A DNA stretch of 64,000 bases from Octopus bimaculoides (taxonomy: Eukaryota), in the NCBI RefSeq assembly GCF_001194135.2, contig NC_068983.1, positions 135,480,210 through 135,544,209 on the forward strand. Reading direction: 5' to 3'. Position numbers and translations under genes: made by a program. This document shows positions 11,012-53,600 of this stretch, one piece after another (position 1 is the first letter of the stretch; every line of letters begins with the position of its first letter). The notes beneath the pieces were generated by a model, which did no database searches, had not been told where the DNA came from, and saw only the letters and a list, made by a program, of their open reading frames with translations.

Positions 11012-11989
11012 TCATCTAGCTATATGCTTCTTTTTAACATTTACTAATTGTAAGTTGGATGAAGATAATGATATTGGTTCATAATTTGCACTAAACAAAC
11101 TAACAGGATAAGGCTTAGAATTCTCAGAATTTTTCAGATGTTGGAATTTATCACAACTTACTAGTCTACGAATTGATGTAGGAGTTATGTAGCCAACTGG
11201 ATGAGATTCTGAATGAAGTGAGAAATGAGGAGAGAGGGATGAAGATGATAATAATGATTGCTCAGTTTGCTGTATATCAGAATTGTGTTCAAAGTTATCC
11301 AAAGATGTATTATGAGAAAGCAAGCTTGACTGAGTTAAATCTGCATCAGAAATGTCTGACCCTTGTTGTGTTGACAAAAAGTCCTGGTATCCATATCGAT
11401 GATCATCTGGACCAATCAGTTCTACTTTGATTTGTGGTTTGTTAAACAGGTCATCTTCATGGTTACTGTTGATATCATCTTGTTCATTACTAGTATCAGA
11501 AATTTCTTGTTTCACAACTTTTCTTTTTATCTCTGTTGGAAATTTGCTGGAAAGTACATTGGAATTTTCCTCAAGATTACGGTTGTAAAGAGTGATAGGA
11601 ATTACTTGAGAAACAGGAGTGAAATTATCTTGGCATGTAATTTGAGTGTTTGTGACGTCTGAGATAAGTCCTGATGAAGAGCAAGGTTCAGTAAGTATTG
11701 ACTCCAACATATCTGTTGGTACTGTTACTGAATTTTCTGCTATTTTTAATTGGTTGTTACAAAGCTGATCAAAACCCTGCATGTCAAGACACTGGGCAAT
11801 AATTTTCAATTGCGACAGGATGTTTTTATCTAGTTCCAGCACACCATCATACATATACTCACAGAAAGCTAATAGTGCTTCTTCACTCACAGTGGAAGGG
11901 AATGTTACAGCAGGCAAGTCAGAATGAAAAGCATTGTAAAATACAGGTAACACTTTGGGACATACAGCTCCAAAGACAATTTGATGAAC
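11012..11989 (-). CDS. BTB/POZ-domain protein, last coding exon (C-terminal half of BTB plus acidic/Ser-rich tail)
   Basis: Acceptor ttttgcag at 11990-11991, phase 0. Reads VHQIVFGAVCPKV...EALLAFCEYMYDGVLEL...LKIIAQCLDMQGFDQLC. 978 nt open to TGA at 11012-11014. Confidence 0.9.
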   Translation of the reverse strand, partial: VHQIVFGAVCPKVLPVFYNAFHSDLPAVTFPSTVSEEALLAFCEYMYDGVLELDKNILSQLKIIAQCLDMQGFDQLCNNQLKIAENSVTVPTDMLESILTEPCSSSGLISDVTNTQITCQDNFTPVSQVIPITLYNRNLEENSNVLSSKFPTEIKRKVVKQEISDTSNEQDDINSNHEDDLFNKPQIKVELIGPDDHRYGYQDFLSTQQGSDISDADLTQSSLLSHNTSLDNFEHNSDIQQTEQSLLSSSSLSPHFSLHSESHPVGYITPTSIRRLVSCDKFQHLKNSENSKPYPVSLFSANYEPISLSSSNLQLVNVKKKHIAR

Positions 11990-12428: not shown

Positions 12429-12759
12429 CATAACACTAACTGTACCATTGCTGATATAAGCATCACACAACCGACCAGCTTTCCATAATGATGACATGTT
12501 TGACATAACAGATGACTGATGGTTTGGAACTACAAGCATACGTTTCTCTTTTTGGTGAGATACATCTATTGTTGGACTCATTTGCAACTGTTTCTCAGAT
12601 TTAGGAGCAGTTTGTAGTTTCTGAATATTTTTTGATGAAAAACTTTGATTTTTGGAAGAGCTACTCGAGCAATCTATTGGTTGGGATCTAGTATCAGTAG
12701 TTGATGATGAAACAGCAGCTGGTTTGTCAATAACATGAGTTTGACCAGCTGAAATAAAA
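12429..12759 (-). CDS. BTB/POZ-domain protein, internal exon (start of BTB)
   Basis: Acceptor ttttttactag (phase 2), donor ATG|GTAAGT (phase 0). Encodes NHQSSVMSNMSSLWKAGRLCDAYISNGTVSVM, which joins in frame to VHQIV. Confidence 0.85.
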
Positions 12760-13819: not shown

Positions 13820-14010
13820 GGTTTAGAGAAGTTATGTTTTTTAGGAACTTTTGCAGGTGTTGAAAATGATTGGTTTGCATCTGATAAGCTATTGATGGAT
13901 TTTGATGCTGAGGAGGAAAGATTTTTCCGCCGGTGTTCCACATCTAACTTATTTAAAGAATATGAAGGAGTAATTTGTTGATGGGCTGATTTAATCACTT
14001 GTGATTTTAC
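13820..14010 (-). CDS. Internal coding exon of BTB gene (Ser/Lys-rich linker)
   Basis: Acceptor ttccttgtag, donor CC|GTGAGT. 191 nt, phase 0 to 2, open frame VKSQVIKSAHQQ...HNFSKP, matching the next exon's phase. Confidence 0.75.
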
Positions 14011-14880: not shown

Positions 14881-14945
14881 CGGAAGTTGATTAGATGTAT
14901 AGAGTTCTGAAGCAGTTTCAAGAATCTTGTCATACTCATTGGAAC
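14881..14945 (-). CDS. Internal coding exon of BTB gene; phase-1 entry exon
   Basis: Acceptor aaatttcag, donor CCG|GTAAAA. 65 nt, phase 1 to 0, open frame (x)SNEYDKILETASELYTSNQLP. No in-frame ATG, so an upstream phase-1 donor is needed. Confidence 0.7.
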
Positions 14946-16528: not shown

Positions 16529-17153
16529 NNNNNNNNNNNNNNNNNNNNNNNNNNNNNNNNNNNNNNNNNNNNNNNNNNNNNNNNNNNNNNNNNNNNNNNN
16601 NNNNNNNNNNNNNNNNNNNNNNNNNNNNNNNNNNNNNNNNNNNNNNNNNNNNNNNNNNNNNNNNNNNNNNNNNNNNNNNNNNNNNNNNNNNNNNNNNNNN
16701 NNNNNNNNNNNNNNNNNNNNNNNNNNNNNNNNNNNNNNNNNNNNNNNNNNNNNNNNNNNNNNNNNNNNNNNNNNNNNNNNNNNNNNNNNNNNNNNNNNNN
16801 NNNNNNNNNNNNNNNNNNNNNNNNNNNNNNNNNNNNNNNNNNNNNNNNNNNNNNNNNNNNNNNNNNNNNNNNNNNNNNNNNNNNNNNNNNNNNNNNNNNN
16901 NNNNNNNNNNNNNNNNNNNNNNNNNNNNNNNNNNNNNNNNNNNNNNNNNNNNNNNNNNNNNNNNNNNNNNNNNNNNNNNNNNNNNNNNNNNNNNNNNNNN
17001 NNNNNNNNNNNNNNNNNNNNNNNNNNNNNNNNNNNNNNNNNNNNNNNNNNNNNNNNNNNNNNNNNNNNNNNNNNNNNNNNNNNNNNNNNNNNNNNNNNNN
17101 NNNNNNNNNNNNNNNNNNNNNNNNNNNNNNNNNNNNNNNNNNNNNNNNNNNNN
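16529..17153. other. Assembly gap (N run)
   Basis: Run of N. Confidence 1.
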
Positions 17154-17241: not shown

Positions 17242-17781
17242 TTAGAGGACAGAAATTACAAATAAAAACGACAAAGGGATATAAAGAAAGTAATTACTTT
17301 TTTTACGTTGCATTAATTTAGAACGATGGGAATAAGTTATTTCGGTGTCAAGCTCTGCAGGTAATTTCTTCGCTAATTTGGTTCTCTTTCTCAATACTAA
17401 GTTATGTCTCTCCATGAATCGACTACACCATGAAGCGGTGGCTTTGAAGTCTTTACAGTCCTCTTGATTTTCTTTTGCCCACTCGAGTGCCATATTGCGG
17501 ATTTTATTTCTTGATATACCGTATCCATTTTTTCGATATTCGCAAACTATATCTGCTAAATAATTTTCTAAATTTGGCCAATGTGCACTACCTCTTCTCA
17601 TTGCACATTTGCTCTTAGGGATTTTCTTTAATATATCTTCTTTTAATCTCCAATCTCTCACCACCTTCTCCGTTACACCATATTCTCGTGCAGCAGCGCA
17701 ATTATTGTGCTTCTTAGCATATGCTATTACGTTCAACTTAAACCCAGCTTGGTATTTCCTTCGTGTAGGTGTTTGCGCCAT
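17242..17781 (-). CDS. pogo/Tigger-type transposase N-terminus: Brinker-type HTH plus CENP-B (Tc5) HTH; DDE domain absent
   Basis: RRKYQAGFKLNVIAYAKKHNNCAAAREYGVTEKVVRDW is Brinker DBD-like; HWPNLE...ISRNKIR...FKATASWCSRFMERHNLVLRKRT is CENP-B HTH-like. Similarity stops before the expected GNxDETP motif. TAAGACG/CGTCTTATA pogo-end-like motifs at 17154-17215. Confidence 0.8.
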   Translation of the reverse strand: MAQTPTRRKYQAGFKLNVIAYAKKHNNCAAAREYGVTEKVVRDWRLKEDILKKIPKSKCAMRRGSAHWPNLENYLADIVCEYRKNGYGISRNKIRNMALEWAKENQEDCKDFKATASWCSRFMERHNLVLRKRTKLAKKLPAELDTEITYSHRSKLMQRKKSNYFLYIPLSFLFVISVL

Positions 17782-18359
17782 GACGAGCCTTTATGATATC
17801 TTGAAGTCGTAGAAACAATATTTACAACGCATGTGACACCAAGATAACAACTAACAATCTCGCGCAAGCGCTATGAGTCTGATTCACCCAACCCAATTAC
17901 TGTAGACGTTAGACCGTCATTTCTAAGCTCTTCTCGGCGTTTAAGACGACGCATCACGATATCGTTTCCCCAGTTTTAAATACAGTGGTTAGTGTGCATT
18001 TTCACCACAGAACCACATCCTTTTAATTGAAAATTAAAATAATCTCGAAATAAAATAACAATGAAATATAAAAATAATCTCTAAACAAATTATTTTTTTT
18101 TCTTTTCTAATTTAAATAGTGCTACCTACCATATTCCCGGTGCCTTTATCTAGCGAGTAATAAATTAGTTTAATTTTAACTGGCAATAATTATAGAACAA
18201 GTATCAAAATATCTTTCATGAATTTATGGGTATCACCTATTTTAGAACTGAAGTCACAAGCCCTATAAGTAGGTACACATCTCAAGTTAAAACGATTCAG
18301 TCAAATAAATAGCCATACCAACAACATTCTCACATAATGAGTTTGTAAATTTTTTTTTA

Positions 18360-19496
18360 CTAACCAATAGGCATATCTTTCATTTGGAGGGCACGTCCAA
18401 ATAACAACTGGGTGTGATTAACGAAATTCAAACACATACTAGGCGTTATGACGGTTACACTTTCGTCAATCAACCTTTCCACAAATCTAAGTTTCCGTTC
18501 AGATTTTGATAATACATTTTGTGGATCACCTGCTGTCATTTCGGAAAGCTGATTGGCTTCCTTCTGTTTGAGTTGAGTCTTAATCACACTCCAGACACTC
18601 TCAAATGGATTTAACATGGGTGAATAAGGCGCAAGACGAAGAAGTGTTGCTCCTTCGAACTCACTTAAGACGTTTTCTAAATCCGAGTGGCAAGAGGCAT
18701 TGTCAATAACCATCACAATTTGTTCACACGAAGTACCATTGCCAATAACTTTTTGCAACAGGTCTCGTACCCATACACTGCACGAGTCACTCCGGTAAGT
18801 TCCTCTTATTCTTTGGAAATCGATCAATCCAGCTTGACAAAGAGCCCCAATCATATGGATAGTCGGACCTTTGGAAGAAGGCAGATGCGCAACTGCACGT
18901 GTTCCTTTCGTTAACCCTCCTTTACTTTTTCTAAGGAAAAGGTTGACATTTGACTTGCTGATATATACAAAGAACTTTCCTTCAGCAGATGATTTCATCA
19001 CATTCTCGATATACTCCTTCCTCAAAAGCTTGTTTTTGTGATTGTTGACTGTCTCTGGGCATAAATGTACTTGCTTCAATGAAATTATTCTTCCATCTAG
19101 ATGACTGGCTATAGTTTGTTCGGACACAATCAATCCATACTTTGAAAGTAAATGTTCGCAAAGATTCTTCAATGTTAATTGTGGACAATCGTTTAACCAC
19201 TCAATAAGTGACTCGATATGTTCATGCTCTATCTTCTTCACCTTATCACGGATACCTCCACGGTGCAAATGTGATGCACGATCTCTGCGTACCCAATTAT
19301 ATGCAGTTGTCTTCTTAACGCCATGTGCTGTAGCAATAGATTTCATATCTTTTCCTCGTTCAGCTGCAGACAGTACACGCTTTCGAGTTTCGAGTGCCGA
19401 CTTCTTGTATGGTCCTCGCTTGCTTCCTCGTTTGACACCTCGTGAACTAGCAGTACTTTCGAACTGACTTTCATTATCTGTAAGCAAACGTAACAT
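18360..19496 (-). CDS. IS630/Tc1-family transposase ORF (378 aa), intact frame, first catalytic Asp lost
   Basis: HTH region, then YISKSNVNL where DE(T/S) is expected, VIDNASCH, and LAPYSPMLNPFE (D-33-E spacing by my count). Perfect 16-bp inverted repeat AAATTAAAATAATCTC at 18031-18046 and 19627-19642. In-frame phase-1 acceptor tttgcttacag at 19478-19479. Confidence 0.85.
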   Translation of the reverse strand: MLRLLTDNESQFESTASSRGVKRGSKRGPYKKSALETRKRVLSAAERGKDMKSIATAHGVKKTTAYNWVRRDRASHLHRGGIRDKVKKIEHEHIESLIEWLNDCPQLTLKNLCEHLLSKYGLIVSEQTIASHLDGRIISLKQVHLCPETVNNHKNKLLRKEYIENVMKSSAEGKFFVYISKSNVNLFLRKSKGGLTKGTRAVAHLPSSKGPTIHMIGALCQAGLIDFQRIRGTYRSDSCSVWVRDLLQKVIGNGTSCEQIVMVIDNASCHSDLENVLSEFEGATLLRLAPYSPMLNPFESVWSVIKTQLKQKEANQLSEMTAGDPQNVLSKSERKLRFVERLIDESVTVITPSMCLNFVNHTQLLFGRALQMKDMPIG

Positions 19497-20385
19497 TGTA
19501 GGAGTAAGTTAAATGATGCAATGTATTCCAATTTAAAACTACTCAACGTAAAATCAAGCAGTTCAAAACACAAACGTCCGCTATGTTTTTATAAAAAAAA
19601 ACAAAAAAAACTATTTAATTTGCTCTGAGATTATTTTAATTTGTTTTGAGGTTATTTTAATCTCGAAGCAAATTAAAATAATTTGCATTATCTCGCTTCG
19701 AGAATATTTAAAGTTGCACTTGAAAGGATTTACACTTTAACATGTCCGGCAATATAAGTGATCAAAATTCTCAAAAAGGAATCGGTTTATTAATGCAAGT
19801 AACAAAACATTATTTAAATGAAGAAGTCATAATTATACTCTATTATATATATACATATATATATTTATTTTTCACGGATGTAATATTCACCCCTCTCCAC
19901 CTAACTATGTGTATAGAGTAGATATGAGCTTTGGCTGCTATTTCTAAAAACCAAATGACTGCGTAGAGGCTCTCCTTTTCGCTCGGGTTTTCTCGTGATT
20001 CCGTTTTACTAAGTAGTAAATCATCGTTTTATGGTATCCATTTAGTTACCGATCGTCTTTGCGAAATAGAAACCAGTCACAGGACGCAAACTTCTGATCA
20101 TTTAGTCGCTATTTTAATGACTCTACTAGCTTCGCTTCCAACGAAAGTATGGAGAGGGAGAAAAGTAATTTACTTCAGAGAAAGAAACGAAGTTATTTTA
20201 CACAGTTTGAGCAGTTAATTTTCAGAAAGCAATTTTAAATAAATAACATTAATTTTGAGACATTCTGATTGAATTAGAAAGAAAGTACATTAAAACAGAT
20301 ATAAACTTATAATTTCCTCTTGTTTGGCGTCCGCGGAGGAATTCTTTTCTTTTGAATCTGTGCTACGGTCTACTTGTTTTGTTGG

Positions 20386-21164
20386 NNNNNNNNNNNNNNN
20401 NNNNNNNNNNNNNNNNNNNNNNNNNNNNNNNNNNNNNNNNNNNNNNNNNNNNNNNNNNNNNNNNNNNNNNNNNNNNNNNNNNNNNNNNNNNNNNNNNNNN
20501 NNNNNNNNNNNNNNNNNNNNNNNNNNNNNNNNNNNNNNNNNNNNNNNNNNNNNNNNNNNNNNNNNNNNNNNNNNNNNNNNNNNNNNNNNNNNNNNNNNNN
20601 NNNNNNNNNNNNNNNNNNNNNNNNNNNNNNNNNNNNNNNNNNNNNNNNNNNNNNNNNNNNNNNNNNNNNNNNNNNNNNNNNNNNNNNNNNNNNNNNNNNN
20701 NNNNNNNNNNNNNNNNNNNNNNNNNNNNNNNNNNNNNNNNNNNNNNNNNNNNNNNNNNNNNNNNNNNNNNNNNNNNNNNNNNNNNNNNNNNNNNNNNNNN
20801 NNNNNNNNNNNNNNNNNNNNNNNNNNNNNNNNNNNNNNNNNNNNNNNNNNNNNNNNNNNNNNNNNNNNNNNNNNNNNNNNNNNNNNNNNNNNNNNNNNNN
20901 NNNNNNNNNNNNNNNNNNNNNNNNNNNNNNNNNNNNNNNNNNNNNNNNNNNNNNNNNNNNNNNNNNNNNNNNNNNNNNNNNNNNNNNNNNNNNNNNNNNN
21001 NNNNNNNNNNNNNNNNNNNNNNNNNNNNNNNNNNNNNNNNNNNNNNNNNNNNNNNNNNNNNNNNNNNNNNNNNNNNNNNNNNNNNNNNNNNNNNNNNNNN
21101 NNNNNNNNNNNNNNNNNNNNNNNNNNNNNNNNNNNNNNNNNNNNNNNNNNNNNNNNNNNNNNNN
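20386..21164. other. Assembly gap (N run), possibly hiding an exon
   Basis: Run of N; see findings for flank evidence. Confidence 1.
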
Positions 21165-29567: not shown

Positions 29568-29820
29568 CTTGGATTGGAAGATTCAGAGTCGGAATGCTGC
29601 TGTGCAGTAAGCTATTCTGGTTATCAACAAAATGGAGACTACAAATGCTATGCTCCCTAGTTATGTGCTTCACGTCGTTGGCATCGAGGGGGTCGTAACC
29701 AGCCAATCTAACCCAGATTGTTCGGAGCTGTATGTTGTCCCAAGGTAGTAGAAAAAATGTTATTGACTTGTCTATGCGACTGTTCGAGTGACAGCCTTTA
29801 ACAATACAGTCGGACGGCAT
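29568..29820 (-). CDS. THAP zinc-finger domain, first coding exon
   Basis: MPSDCIVKGC...TFFLLPWD..LRTIWV...SICSLHF...LLHSSIPTLNLP fits the C2CH THAP signature with conserved P, W, F and P. Donor CAAG|GTACGA, phase 1. Confidence 0.85.
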
Positions 29821-38131: not shown

Positions 38132-38215
38132 NNNNNNNNNNNNNNNNNNNNNNNNNNNNNNNNNNNNNNNNNNNNNNNNNNNNNNNNNNNNNNNNNNNNN
38201 NNNNNNNNNNNNNNN
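38132..38215. other. Assembly gap (N run)
   Basis: Run of N. Confidence 1.
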
Positions 38216-40105: not shown

Positions 40106-40129
40106 ATGCTTTCCATAGTGTTAGCTTCT

Positions 40130-41180
40130 AGATCATCAACATTGTCTTGTAAAGAGAGTCTGCTGAATGTCAACCCAACAGAAGGACCAGCTATCCAAAT
40201 TGACAGTACCTTGGTAGATAAAGCAATTAAGGGTATGAAGACAGGGATCACCACAGAGATGCTTAAAATATCTGGCGGTGTCAGCTATAGTCTAGTCACC
40301 CATATGGTCAATCAGGTGATACATGAAGGAGTCATACCCATTGACAGCACCATAGTCAACCGAGAGCTTCTCTATGCTGATAACTTTGCTCTAATAGCTG
40401 AATTACTATCAGAACTAAGGAGAAGTTTCAGATGTGGAAGCAAGGTCTAGAATTAAAGGGCCTTAGAGTCAATCTAGTAAAAACCAAAGTCTTAATAAGT
40501 AGGAAGGCAGACAAACCACAAATCCCTTCAGGTAGATGGCCCTGCTCAGTCTGTAGAAAAGGTGTAGATAGAAACTCCATAAGATGTACCCGGTGTAAGC
40601 TATGGACACATAAGAGATGCAGCAATATCAAAGGAAGGCTAACTGGGAAGATAGTTTTTGTGTGTGGCAAATGTTCAGGAGCAGTAAACACTGAAAATGT
40701 GCAGACAACAGCTTCCGTCACATCCCAGGAGGAAAAAAACTATAAGTAGTTGATAGCTTTTGTTAATAATGTAGTAACGCCTGCGCATGCGTAGAATTAA
40801 ACAAGCAAGCGTTTCCCGCTCAATTCATTCTCTTTTACGCTGGCCAGCGATTGAGCATGGACGTGTGTTTAATAGCTGTCCCTACATCTTTCGGTCTTAT
40901 ACTCGACAGCTCGTTATTCTCACCTCTAAAGATGTATAACTAAAGATATGTATGTTTTACCAAGTAAATAAATGTTGTTTAAGTTGTTTAGTCTGGAGTT
41001 CAGCGTTCCGTCTATTTCTTTAATTTTATAGTAGAAAGTCAGGTATACAATCTAAAGATGTATAACCCACTTTCTACTAAAATACAAATAATAAATGTTA
41101 CCTAGGTAACCAAGTCAGTAGCAGGGGGTGGTTGCTCTGAGAGTGTAGCTGCTAGAATAAGAATAGCCTGGGCAAAGTTC
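40130..41180 (+). mobile_element. RTE-type LINE fragment (RT, PHD-like Cys/His finger), interrupted by a 330-bp insertion
   Basis: LLYADNFAL..WKQGLELKGLRVNLVKTK, then CSVC..CTRC....H..C..CGKC. Resumes at 41096 with YLGNQVSS.GGCSESVAARIRIAWAKF. Confidence 0.8.
40766..41095. mobile_element. Unclassified insertion flanked by 5-bp duplication TGTTA
   Basis: TGTTA at 40761-40765 and 41096-41100. Removing one copy restores the LINE sequence seen at 25930-25960. Confidence 0.7.
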
Positions 41181-46835: not shown

Positions 46836-48402
46836 TGCAAACTATCAAATTTAGAAAGAACATCTTGCAGTATCAGTACTGGTATTTTAATTCGCAGAGA
46901 AAAATCTGATTATAAAAACAAGCATTCATTCTTAAATCGCATGTTTAACAGTGTACTTAAAAGGAATATACAATTTCCACAACCAATCACTAATGGCAGA
47001 ATATAACTAAAACATCGCTCTTTCCATCGCTAGACTGAGAACACTTGTTCTACGATTAAGTATGACTTCTGATACAGACCTAGTAACTTACGAGTTAAAA
47101 CTGAGTAGAGAACAGAAGTGTAGAATAAAGCATCATAAATGTTAATGGTATTATAATTTACGATGCCCATATCGTGAAATGATTTTTTAAATGCATCGTG
47201 GACAAATTGACACCACTTCAGTTAGGGAACTAAATAACTGACAATTGTTTTGGTAAGTAAAGCATTGAGCCAGATGCCTTACCATTTGGGCCAACTTAAT
47301 TCATAAATAAACTTCTGTTTTACAAGCGTACAGTTTACAAAGGGTGGAGATGGATCTGTTGGAAACAACCTAAAGAGGTCCAGTCAAGCATACATTTATT
47401 TTTTAGCTTACAATTTTTTTTTATTTCTCGTGCGATTTCATATAAATTAAAATTAAATACAGCCAGTTTTAAAATTTGAAAAATAAAATTAAACTATCTA
47501 AAGTTCTAATTGCTTGGTAAGCATTAAAAACCAAGTTGTAATAGTAGGCGTGTCAAGTTTGCTAAGAGTTCACTTCCTGTTTCGGAGGGAGGGAACCGGC
47601 GAAAAACTGTACAATTCAGAACCATGAGTTATTAAACACGGAGCATTTATTCTCCCTCTCCCTCAACATGAACTCACCTCACATAGTGATAAAAATGGAA
47701 TAAAAATATAGGAAGTCGTGGCATTGATACATTTCCAAAGAGCATTAACGCTCTCAGTAAAAAAAAAAAAGTCATACCAATTAGGAATATAGGCCAGACA
47801 CAACATTAGCAGAAAACAGCTCTGCGATGTTTATAATAGTACTTTATATATATCTCTCTATGAGCCTGCTTACAATATATAACTGCATTCCTGACTATAA
47901 TGTATTTCTATCTGTACTTAAGTAAATTTTAATTATATTGTGCTCGAGCACATATTTACATTTAAAAACAATTGAGTCAAGATCGATGATCAGTTGTTTC
48001 TCTCTTTATTACAAATACACTTGTTTTCAATGCCGAGAACCAGTTAGGAGGAACTAAACCTAACTCCATATATTACATGGTCCTTCGTTTGAAAGATCTT
48101 TAAAAGATTTGGAACTGTTACAGAACTATCATATTCCTCTCCCCAATACTCCCGAGAAAAAAAAACATGAACATAAAACACGATTTCTGAAATATATCTG
48201 CAATATATTGCACTCGAATAGAAAATCAAATTAACTTATGATCTTTTTATTACACTCTATACACTGAATAATGTAAGTTTTTGTTGCCCATCAATAATAA
48301 AGATATACGGGTTGCTTCTCCATTCCGTTGTGTATATTCTTTCAAAATAAGTTTTCAATTCTTACAATTCAAACAAGTAACCCAAATTTAAGTTAAACTT
48401 AC

Positions 48403-48915
48403 CTCATATATATCTGCTTTCTTCATAACGTGTCCATTATTCCTTTCAAATAAATCTTTCTTTCTAATAAGTTGTTCAGGCAAAGGTACGATAGATCGAA
48501 CTGAATGCGAAGAATGTCGGCTTTTTTTTCTGCTGGGAGCAACCGATGTATCCGTACACAGTTTTTCATCACCGATATAATGAATAACAACTTTCTGATC
48601 ACTGTCCAGTAATCTGTAGACATGCTTTTGAAAATTGTTTTTTTGTCCTTCTTTGGTCATTAAATAGAAGAAACTTTTCCGTAAAGCTGGGCGTCTGTTG
48701 AGGGACATAGTCGATGTACCTCTGTTCGACCAACGATAGCCATCTGTTCGCCAATTATCCAAATACATACGAAGTCTAGGTTGGAATAAATAGATTTCTC
48801 CCCCGGCAGGACGATTTGGAATTTTTGATACAAAGTTCGAACTTGGAAGACATAAAAGCTTCATAGCTTCTATTGTCTCAAGTCTTGTATATCTTCTTCT
48901 TGTATAAGGCTCCAT
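48403..48915 (-). CDS. CG-1 (CAMTA-type)-like DNA-binding domain exon, probably MULE-transposon derived
   Basis: MEPYTRRRY...PNRPAGGEIYLF...DNWRTDGYRWSNRG...LRKSFFYL...FQKHVYRL...VVIHYIGDE. 513 nt open from the ATG to perfect donor GAG|GTAAGT (phase 0). Possible non-coding upstream exon ends at CAGG|GTAAAT near 49454. Confidence 0.75.
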
Positions 48916-50696: not shown

Positions 50697-53600
50697 ATGG
50701 CAAGGGACTTTCGTAGGGTAGCGTTTTGTTTTTTGGTTTTCTCACATTTATATCCTTCATCGATTTATAACAAATCACATACACCCAGACATATGCATGT
50801 GTCTGGTATATGTATGTATATTATGTATTAGGTCGTCAAGTATGAAATTTGTAGTAAGATATATAGTAAACTTTGTCAGCTGCTCATTTTGCGCCATTAT
50901 TATATCTTGACAATCTTTATTTTTTTGTTAGAAAGCTGACACATTTATTTCTTTATTCTAACTCATTTTGTGCTTTATAAAGTATTTATAAATCGTTTTT
51001 TACTGTTTTTGTTTAGAGATGGATAAGTCAGAAATTCGTACAGTTATGAAATATGAGTTCTTTCTTTGAAATGCAGCATCACAGACAGCTTGGAATATTA
51101 ATGGAGCATTTCATTCTAATTTCATATTAATGGAGTATTTCATGCTAATGTTATTACACAGCAGACATTTTACGATAAATAAGTACAATCCCCCGACATT
51201 ATCATTGTTATTGAGTTAATTGGTTTGCAAAATTTCATTCCGGTAACTGACCTCACAAATGAGCAATGCTGTCGTCCAGAAACAAAGGTGGATAATGATG
51301 AACTGAAAGCCACTGTCGAGTCAGATCCATCTCAAAGTGCCTGTGAATTATTGTTGTTTGGTGTTAGCAAGCAAACAATATTGACTCACCTAGTTCAAAT
51401 CGGTAAAGTGAAAAAGTTGGATAAGTGGGTTCCACATGACCTCAATGAAAATCAGAAACAGCAACGTTTGGAAGCCTGCATTATGCTACTTTCTTGTCAC
51501 AAAAATGAATCATCTTTGAATTGAACTGTAACATGTGATGAGAAATGGATCCAATACAACAACCATAAACGTTCAGCACAATGATTAGACAAAGATGAGC
51601 CACCAAAACACAGTCCATAAAGCAAAATTCATCAAAAGAAGCTGATGGTGTGTGTATGGTGGTCTGGTGCAGGTGTGATCCATTATGATTTCATTAAACC
51701 TGGCTCATCAATCACGGCCAAAGTATACTGCAGCAAACTGGACCAAATGATGCAGAAACTTACAAAAAAACCCAGCCTAGATTAGTCAAGAGATCCACTC
51801 CTATTTTATTGCAAGACAATGCCAGACCACACATTGCAAAAATGACATTGGCGAAACTACACAGGTTGGAGCTGGGAGTTCTCCATCATCTACCATACTC
51901 ACCTGATCTCGTCCCCACTGACTACTACTTCTTCCAGAATTTGGATAACTTTTTGATAAAAAAAATTTTTAATTCCGACGATGCTGTAAAACAGGCCTTC
52001 CAAAATTTTATTGACTCTAGATTGCTAGGCTTTTACAGTTCCGGGCTAGACAAGCTACTGCTGAAATGGCAAAAGTGTATTGACAATATGGAGGCATACT
52101 TTGATGAATAAAATTATTCCTTGTATTTATAAAACATTAGCAAACTTTTTTTTTCTTTTCTATAAATGTCATACTTGACGACCTAATATATATGTGTTTA
52201 ATTTCTATCTTTCAAATACTTCTCGTAAAGCATTGATCAACTGAAGTTGTGGAAGAAGATATTGTTCAAAGTTTTGAGCAGCAGGATCGAACTTGAAACC
52301 ACATGGGTATAGAATGAATTTCCGAACCACACAGACTTTCTGTGTTCATTCTTGCTTTGTAAGAGATTTAATCTAAGACTTGAGTTGAAACTGAAAAGCT
52401 GACTCATTTAACCATTTAAAATACACACACACACACACACATATATATATCATTACAATAATGAAGTGTCAACAAGTTTTGATGCTCATCTGCAACCTTA
52501 TCATAGCGTGATCTTATGTTTCAGATGTATACCAAAACTTTTTGATACTTTATAGTATACAGTATAATTAAGAAATAAAACAAAAATGAATGTAATGGTA
52601 TATATGTATGTGTTTAAATGAGTGATATGACTATTCTACTTGAGAATAAATGCATCATCATGTATTCTGGGAGGAAAAACCCAGCTTTTACATACACCCT
52701 CAATAACACCAATCTTAAGAAGTCTGTTAGTGAATGTGACCTGGGTATTATTGGTCAAGAAGGCCAAGGATGTCTTAACATCACTAGTAAGACCTTTGTC
52801 GGGTGCTCTCCAGCTATCTATTTAAATTGCATATGACTATGGTATGTCCACATCTAGAGTTTGCATCACCCCTCTGGAACTCCTATAAGCATATCATTCT
52901 CGTGGAAACTGTTCAGAAACATCCAACCAGACGAATACCTGCCATCAGGCACCATATTCTGAACATCTTACTTCTCTGGGCATGGACACATTAAAGCTCT
53001 GACATTTGGCAGCTGACTTGGTAGACACCCACAAGATTACCCACCATCTTTCCAACAACAACCTTGGGCACTTTTTTGAATTCCATACATCTAACACTCA
53101 TCAAAAAACAACATGGCACCCATGACTTTCAGAAACATTTTTTCATGGTGAGAATTGCTGAAGCATGAAGTAAACTACTTGCATCAGTTATTAACTGTCA
53201 AGACACTATATCCTTCAAAACTTTCATGCTTCCTGAAATTCATCAATAGTGTACATGATGTCCCCCCACCCCATTTCTTCTTGCTTTTTTCTCTTTTTTA
53301 AGACTTATTCACGGTTCACTTCCTGTGCATATTCTATGTACTGTTCATGCAGTTTTGGTTACTTTTTGTGATGCACCTAAGCACTGTATACATTAAGTTC
53401 ATTATATATATATATATATATATATATGATTTCTAACATAGGCACAAAGTTATACAAATATATATTAGTGACAGAGGCAGCATTAATACCAAGAGGTAAT
53501 ATTTATCTTCACTTAAATGTGGATGTTCTGTTTGAACAAACTATACTGCAGTAGATACCATGAGAGAAACTGTCATATTGGCTTTTGGTGCAAAATACAA

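Follow-up and report, generated by a model that had tools for sequence, protein, structure and literature searches.

The window analysed here, a stretch of 64,000 nucleotides of Octopus bimaculoides DNA (contig NC_068983.1, positions 135,480,210 to 135,544,209), carries on its minus strand the BTB gene LOC106872006 (11012–48915). The alternative 5' exons of this host gene encode DNA-binding modules, and the open reading frame (ORF) of an IS630/Tc1-type transposase (18360–19496, minus strand) is found among them. CG-1, THAP, IS630-type transposase and pogo helix-turn-helix (HTH) modules all join one phase-1 acceptor at 14945. The features of this locus are consistent with an early or neutral exonisation of the transposon into the BTB gene.

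The transposase frame comprises 378 codons plus TAG with zero stops or frameshifts inside, in agreement with the original prediction, which had reported an unbroken frame of 1137 bp. It contains an HTH DNA-binding region (~aa 27–140) and a DDE_3 core (aa 177–318). The ORF matches Pfam DDE_3 (1e-17, 64.8 bits, cutoff 28.6) and the NCBIfam IS630 transposase model (7e-28, 97.9 bits, narrowly below the equivalog cutoff of 100); N-terminal Pfam matches to HTH_32 and HTH_Tnp_IS630 are weak. An exhaustive representative protein search yielded 99 homologs at E<=1e-30, and a further protein (P0071) is a fragment 76% identical to the transposase. Exact-sequence look-up of the bare ORF, the Hydra homolog and P0024/P0025 returned no match. 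An AlphaFold (AF2) model built from 21 sequences, with a mean predicted local distance difference test (pLDDT) score of 76, has as its top PDB matches the Mos1 mariner transposase, the Sleeping Beauty catalytic domain and the SETMAR transposase domain. The ORF thus displays the IS630/Tc1/mariner (ITm) arrangement, an RNase H-like catalytic fold with a bipartite HTH region ahead of it.

Alignment with 20 homologs places the family motif (V/I/M)-D-E-(S/T)-N-x-N over I-S180-K181-S-N-V-N of the window ORF. The first Asp of the catalytic triad is kept in all 20 homologs and is replaced by Ser in the window (codon 180, AGC, 18957–18959, minus strand), confirming the Asp-to-Ser position proposed earlier. 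The second catalytic Asp (D265, GAC, 18702–18704, minus strand) and the catalytic Glu (E299, GAG, 18600–18602, minus strand), located 34 residues past D265, are kept. In the AF2 model, S180 is located on strand 175–185, D265 follows strand 260–264 and E299 is at the start of helix 297–315. With S180 in place of the first Asp, the DD(34)E triad is incomplete. Judged from these residues, the ORF is an intact, catalytically dead IS630/Tc1-type transposase, and a product in which Ser or Gly takes the place of the first catalytic Asp should be unable to transpose.

Two RefSeq models of LOC106872006 use the transposase as a 1113-nt phase-1/phase-1 exon (18365–19477, minus strand). Isoform X2 (XP_014774298.1; P0046) is 976 aa long, with the transposase at residues 85–456, and is translated exactly by the chain 29820–29568, 19477–18365, 14945–14881, 14010–13820, 12759–12429, 11989–11012. 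Isoform X1 (XP_014774296.1; P0195) contains the identical transposase exon, placed after CG-1 exons; the CG-1 head exon boundaries of this isoform were not reproduced in the range searched, near an N gap at 38132–38215. The acceptor AG (tttgcttacag|AT, 19478–19479, minus strand) is conserved in O. vulgaris and sets a phase-1 exon start at 19477. As had been predicted for an acceptor at 19478, the THAP exon (29820–29568) joins 19477 in frame, and this exact junction is present in XP_014774298.1. The 485-aa THAP-transposase protein predicted from it was too long, with THAP plus transposase to the stop amounting to 456 aa, and no model makes use of the possible donor proposed at 20307, for which the ortholog proteins provide no match either. 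The donor through which the models leave the exon had been overlooked. This donor (ATTG|GTTAGT, minus strand) has its G|GT at 18365|18364–18363, inside the final GGT codon (G378), and connects to the first common exon (14945). Cutting the G378 codon one base in, it leads to the stop being spliced out, with the protein reading ...DMPIG|SNEYDK... into the BTB exons.

The remaining exons of the host gene are likewise on the minus strand. All alternative 5' exons join the phase-1 acceptor of the first common exon (14881–14945), which is followed by a second common exon (13820–14010), an exon in which the BTB domain starts (12429–12759) and a last exon encoding the remaining BTB domain, the C-terminal region and the stop (11012–11989). 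Splicing of THAP straight to 12748 was considered and rejected, as 14945–14881 and 14010–13820 intervene and the exon begins at 12759. The THAP alternative 5' exon (29568–29820, Pfam THAP 2e-09) has a phase-1 donor and displays 81% aa identity with its Argonauta hians counterpart, and the CG-1-domain alternative 5' exon is located at 48400–48915, its 3' boundary being approximate.

A pogo-derived alternative 5' exon (BrkDBD + Tc5 HTH; 17298–17781, minus strand) is located 579 bp downstream of the transposase and has a phase-1 donor (A|GTAATT). Its ORF of 161 codons has its own ATG and codes for no more of a pogo/Tigger-type transposase than its DNA-binding part (BrkDBD + HTH_Tnp_Tc5). The encoded protein is 98% identical to that of O. 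vulgaris, where it is annotated as the pogo-HTH-BTB isoform CAI9720209.1. We considered whether this ORF is a mere transposon fragment, given 20% identity to the pogo-type exons of paralogs, and this was ruled out by CAI9720209.1 and by a ratio of nonsynonymous to synonymous substitution (dN/dS) of 0.12. The dN/dS values compare O. bimaculoides with O. vulgaris, those of the transposase being Nei-Gojobori estimates with bootstrap intervals. By this measure the pogo exon is clearly a constrained, Octopus-lineage, transposase-derived alternative first exon adjoining the dead transposase. Octopus paralogs of the host gene combine BTB with THAP, CG-1 or pogo/CENP-B-type HTH, and a THAP+BTB search found LOC115209547. 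The same alternative-module pattern is seen in the paralogs LOC106872008, LOC115209549 and LOC115209617.

The transposase ORF is bordered on both sides by copies of a 19-nt motif, TAATCTCGAARCAAATTAA. With <=3 mismatches allowed, five copies occur in the window, all of them flanking the ORF, compared to a chance expectation of 0.16. The 3'-side arm of the terminal inverted repeats (TIRs; 18017–18116) contains two plus-strand copies (18040–18058 and 18075–18093). The 5'-side arm (19588–19729) contains two inverted, minus-strand copies (19615–19633 and 19636–19654) and an extra plus-strand copy (19658–19676). Together with the adjacent copy, this opposite-orientation copy makes up a 25-nt palindrome (88%; 19630–19654/19658–19682), and the 5' arm is ~36 nt longer than the 3' arm. 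The arms extend over ~90–140 bp at ~68–76% identity with several indels (z ~6 versus shuffles). More of the ends is therefore preserved than the original prediction had allowed, according to which the terminal repeats were eroded except for a 16-bp motif. The window hence carries a complete but worn element of ~1.7 kb (~18017–19729), and no second copy was found within the 64 kb. TA dinucleotides are present at 18024–25 and 19689–90 in one register of the arms and not in the longer one; the region is AT-rich and the ends are uncertain. Young-looking metagenomic relatives (L005, L009 and L011) have TIRs of 113–200 bp with tandem short motifs and arms 90–100% identical, and the shared end design supports the assignment of the window arms as TIRs. 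While an arm identity of ~70–75% would imply great age, this argument is not relied on here. The use of TIR decay as a clock for selection on the ORF was dropped, as relatives with intact ORFs (L001, L006) also have poor TIRs. The sequence CAGTGGTTAGTG... at 17983–18016 was rejected as the true element terminus for want of a partner at the other end. This stretch, CAGTGGTTAGTGTGCATTTTCACCACAGAACCAC (17983–18016, plus strand), adjoins the 3' TIR, has no partner in the window, and looks like a tRNA-derived (A-box-like) short interspersed nuclear element head or a solo Tc1/pogo-type terminus. A contig from a third octopod (L026, ~1215–1250) terminates in a different tRNA-like sequence, ...GGGGATTCGATCCCAGAAC (B-box-like).

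The orthologous locus in O. vulgaris (L025, no Ns) presents, in order, CG-1, THAP (duplicated), an uninterrupted 387-codon transposase ORF, a pogo-type HTH ORF 577 bp on, and the common exons. The transposase is thus fixed in both species between the same neighbours (THAP upstream, pogo exon 577–579 bp downstream) and does not represent a copy from a recent burst, which the original prediction had named as a possible refutation. In the window, both transposase-derived ORFs are located on a 3.2-kb contig bounded by N gaps (16529–17153 and 20386–21164), the placement of which rested on scaffolding. This contig is collinear with the O. vulgaris locus at 93% identity, and since the latter is gap-free, its scaffold order and orientation are validated. 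The two O. vulgaris THAP exon copies are in tandem (L025 24684–24950 and 25814–26080; 93–97% identity to the annotated protein), compared to one in the window, with the upstream copy closer to the O. bimaculoides exon (dN/dS 0.13 versus 0.44).

Codon 180 is AGC (Ser) in O. bimaculoides and GGC (Gly) in O. vulgaris. These differ by a single step, as do GGC and GAC, so that loss of the Asp predates the split of the two species, which occurred ~34 million years (My) ago (PMC10700109). The predicted change of DE(T/S) to SKS with the second Asp and the Glu retained stands for O. bimaculoides; at the position of the first Asp, O. vulgaris carries Gly rather than Ser. Since both species lack the first catalytic Asp at an orthologous position, the element cannot be active. 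In Argonauta hians, CG-1, THAP and the common exons are kept, and both the transposase and the pogo ORF are missing from the orthologous 5.5-kb intron.

Four consecutive O. vulgaris proteins, CAI9720206 to CAI9720209, are CG-1-, THAP-, transposase- and pogo-HTH-BTB forms that all join the same common exon. The transposase form, CAI9720208.1 (P0194, 911 aa, mislabelled ZNRF4), begins at the transposase ATG, contains the transposase unbroken and continues as ...DMPVG|SNEYDK... into the BTB exons. The O. vulgaris annotation consists of one EVM consensus model per locus, with alternative forms added via PASA from RNA-seq and Iso-Seq assemblies, and used UniProt proteomes as protein evidence (PMC10700109). 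The UniProt O. bimaculoides entry for the host gene (A0A0L8H9F2; P0203) is without the transposase, so that the transposase-BTB model of O. vulgaris does not depend on RefSeq. This model probably rests on a transcript, going by the published annotation method.

Our preferred reading, to which we assign a slightly better than even chance, is that a fixed, dead transposon has been exonised into the BTB gene, either as a cassette or as a fourth alternative first exon, under weak or absent constraint, making the locus an early or neutral host-transposase fusion. The element inserted in the Octopus lineage, being present in O. bimaculoides and O. vulgaris and absent from the Argonauta intron. An insertion age of at least ~34 My follows, with the intron holding the LOC106872006 alternative 5' exons as the site. 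The copy is fixed, immobile and catalytically dead. Its sense ORF, between the phase-1 acceptor (19477) and a phase-1 donor that its terminal codons supply (GGT|CAG/TAG, exon end 18365), is readable in frame into the BTB exons. Public models read it as a cassette exon (THAP-transposase-BTB and CG-1-transposase-BTB, O. bimaculoides RefSeq) or as a further alternative first exon from its own ATG (transposase-BTB, O. vulgaris annotation). Any product would, if active at all, serve as an HTH DNA-binding module tethered to the BTB domain. Fixation, loss of catalysis and in-frame splice compatibility, as expected of a domesticated transposase, are all present.

A number of observations weigh against this reading, and most of them favour the view that the transposase is an unused relic, an old and dead transposon, not yet broken, within a large intron, with the models that include it being prediction artefacts or rare splicing noise and no selection involved. 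We consider this possible, though unlikely. Gene predictors readily take in long in-frame ORFs, and transposase-less isoforms are annotated in O. sinensis RefSeq, O. vulgaris and the original O. bimaculoides annotation, so that inclusion of the transposase is at most alternative. The splice sites are of ordinary strength, the acceptor for 19477 being one of 55 out of 745 AGs in the same intron that pass a simple pyrimidine/YAG test. The O. bimaculoides TAG is derived and comes one codon early, O. vulgaris and the third octopod reading GGT CAG TAA. In these two, the donor reads G|GTCAGTAA. The ancestral C-terminus of the family is Gly-Gln-stop, and as these codons make up the donor, the site arose by chance from the end of the transposase reading frame itself. 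Furthermore, the transposase has a dS of 0.060 and a dN of 0.044, and its dN/dS of 0.72 (bootstrap 0.39–1.42, from 52 substitutions only) has an interval spanning 1 and does not indicate purifying selection. At similar dS, the pogo exon displays 0.12, the CG-1 and last exons 0.09 each and the THAP exon 0.13–0.44. The dN/dS comparison with other cephalopods that had been suggested as a check, made here with O. vulgaris, leaves the usual signature of domestication missing: ~0.1 for neighbouring exons, 0.72 for the transposase. Mismatches fall almost evenly on codon positions 1/2/3 (19/15/18). Of the 21 family sequences, the window protein shows the most departures from the consensus, at 9 of 63 near-invariant columns. 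Most of these departures are common to O. vulgaris and so predate the split. Between the two species, 6 of the 63 near-invariant and 31 of 315 other positions differ (odds ratio 0.96); near-invariant columns therefore change like others and the ancestral transposase constraints are gone. H270 and P268 have each been lost in one of the two species. The flanking 5' region and 3' TIR, at 12% divergence, are not conserved either. A third octopod, represented by Logan contigs from SRR11869384 and SRR11869391, has a copy that differs by 13.3% from the ORF of O. bimaculoides and is disrupted by 6 in-frame stops as well as 5 frameshifting indels. In that sample, the host gene retains an intact last exon, 4.2% divergent, compared to 12.3% for adjacent noncoding DNA. 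The similarity of 13.3% to 12.3% argues for orthology, and the copy is a probable ortholog decaying neutrally on this equality of divergence alone; the flanks of the short contig gave no match that would prove it. ORF decay in sister species, which had been listed as a refutation, is hence not seen in O. vulgaris, where the frame is open, and is probable in the third octopod.

The relic explanation is less readily reconciled with the preservation of the frame. Comparison of the two species yields 88 differing sites among 1447 (6.1%) and 9 indel events in the noncoding flanks, and 52 among 1134 (4.6%) and a single indel in the ORF, a 27-nt deletion in O. bimaculoides that stays in frame. In simulations, the probability of no stop was 0.30 for 26 substitutions and 0.096 for 52. 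Using the local indel rate (7 events per 1447 bp outside low-complexity sequence, 6 of them frame-breaking), the neutral chance of an open frame on both lineages since the split is ~1e-3. The scan for intact ORFs removes most of the surprise of the open O. bimaculoides frame. For the O. vulgaris branch alone, a figure that allows for this ascertainment, the chance is ~0.03 at the local rate and ~0.02 at the lesion rate of the third octopod. In addition, the same donor was chosen by two independent annotation pipelines, the extra O. vulgaris isoforms derive from transcript assemblies (PMC10700109), and the sense-oriented element is located exactly within an exon array sharing one phase-1 junction. 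The frame thus appears to be kept slightly better than chance with an amino-acid sequence almost free, evidence that points two ways, and the usual signature of domestication is, on these sequences, absent. An established, functionally important transcription-factor isoform, in which the transposase HTH directs BTB to TIR-like sites and constraint mixed with positive selection accounts for the high dN/dS, is improbable in our view. It would agree with a frame open for ~34 My in two lineages, with loss of the catalytic Asp before the split while the ORF was kept, and with the similar use of THAP and pogo-derived modules by the host gene and its paralogs (PMC10027918). However, the DNA-binding part taken alone has a dN/dS of 0.64 (0.23–2.5), no lower than the rest, and its divergence compared with that of the catalytic domain displays a trend only, which is non-significant. 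Family-invariant residues are not spared, and the third-octopod copy has decayed. A related proposal, which we regard as rather doubtful, is transposase capture in progress: an array of four alternative 5' exons, the newest of which gives a translated transposase-BTB isoform with the frame under selection and a fast-evolving DNA-binding surface, perhaps targeting relics of its own TIR motif across the genome, would then represent the earliest stage in the birth of a fusion, given that the TIRs, a full ORF and a core of neutral appearance can still be recognised. Least probable is a CSB-PGBD3-like alternative terminal exon, with THAP exon(s) spliced to 19477 and the transcript ending past the transposase stop to give a THAP-transposase protein. 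The in-frame THAP junction (456 aa), used by XP_014774298.1, and an AT-rich stretch with ATTAAA-type hexamers beyond the stop would allow it. However, no public model ends there, all passing the donor at 18365 into the BTB exons; the TAG is derived in O. bimaculoides and the stop differs in O. vulgaris, whose model begins at the transposase ATG without THAP. The proposed exon ending at 20307 is without support, and purifying selection is lacking. Of the CSB-PGBD3 likeness drawn in the original prediction, an intronic sense transposase after the THAP exon therefore stands and the terminal exon does not.

Early exonisation of this kind can be set beside known fusions. SETMAR of anthropoid primates combines SET exons with an Hsmar1 mariner transposase, and resembles the octopus locus in that a Tc1/mariner-superfamily copy with an altered triad is fixed beside host exons and read in frame. 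The SETMAR transposase is under purifying selection, above all in its DNA-binding domain, and forms the 3'-terminal exon, whereas the octopus transposase is located upstream of the BTB exons, has its stop spliced out and has a dN/dS of 0.72. In CSB-PGBD3, a piggyBac transposase serves as an alternative 3' terminal exon in an ERCC6 intron. Both cases involve an intronic sense transposase with an acceptor just upstream and a phase that matches the host exons. In contrast, PGBD3 belongs to another superfamily, terminates the transcript and is conserved under purifying selection; the octopus models run on into host exons and the octopus ORF is not so conserved. Host-transposase fusion genes reportedly arise by 'transposase capture', as Cosby et al. 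are said to have described in 2021. Tc1/mariner HTH domains have been captured by F-box genes (PMC12062965). As in such fusions, alternative splicing at the octopus locus would link the DNA-binding domain of a transposase to an effector domain of the host; loss of catalytic residues is frequent in such cases. Captures usually retain the DNA-binding part only, under constraint, whereas the octopus case retains a full-length ORF and recognisable TIRs with constraint undetectable. The octopus locus would be at an earlier stage than the described captures, or a neutral event.

Drosophila BTB genes such as lola, mod(mdg4) and the pipsqueak-type BTB-HTH genes similarly connect one BTB scaffold to many alternative DNA-binding modules, some of them transposase-derived. 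In the fly genes the BTB domain is N-terminal and the variable exons are 3', while the octopus variable modules are 5' with BTB downstream. THAP-BTB and CENPB/pogo-BTB domain association in octopus has been reported (PMC10027918) for the same gene family, to which the host gene and its paralogs (LOC106872008, LOC115209549, LOC115209617) belong. That report concerns domain co-occurrence only, and presents no DDE_3/IS630-type transposase-BTB and no alternative 5' exon array. A literature search for this transposase-BTB fusion yielded no paper that describes it.

New transcription factors are known to arise from host-transposase fusions, and nearly all described examples are old and reduced to a constrained DNA-binding domain. 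The octopus locus may show the preceding step, in which a whole transposon, with ends still recognisable and the active site dead for at least ~34 My, is joined to a BTB effector via splice sites that arose by accident from the element's own codons. The host gene has demonstrably recruited two other transposase-derived modules alike, THAP and the pogo HTH, each with a dN/dS of ~0.1. Should the fusion transcript prove real, the locus would allow the question of whether captures start out as neutral exonisations to be tested in nature. Should the models instead be artefacts, it provides a clean example of intact intronic transposable element ORFs inflating predicted proteins. In addition, the present analysis corrects public annotation, which lists the proteins as 'uncharacterized' and 'E3 ubiquitin-ligase ZNRF4'.

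Several further observations were made among homologs and elsewhere in the window. A Logan protein of 404 aa (P0013) has an N-terminal RING-type zinc finger (PF14634/PF13639) fused to a full transposase of the same family with 7 family-invariant columns altered, and may be another host-transposase fusion. The metagenomic contig (L002) of the closest non-octopus homolog (P0001, 57%) starts with a 148-nt, 97% inverted duplication (1–148/330–477) over the gene start, which is most likely an assembly fold-back and not a TIR. In the window, an ORF fragment at 51809–52111 (plus strand) has mariner-type C-terminal motifs (...DNARPH...LPYSPDL.P.DY...) of an unrelated Tc1/mariner family, with no Pfam hit at E<=0.01. 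Two overlapping ORFs at 40106–40749 (plus strand), located in the large intron upstream of the THAP exon, include a PHD finger in the second (2.3e-06), and may belong to a retroelement or represent a further captured domain.

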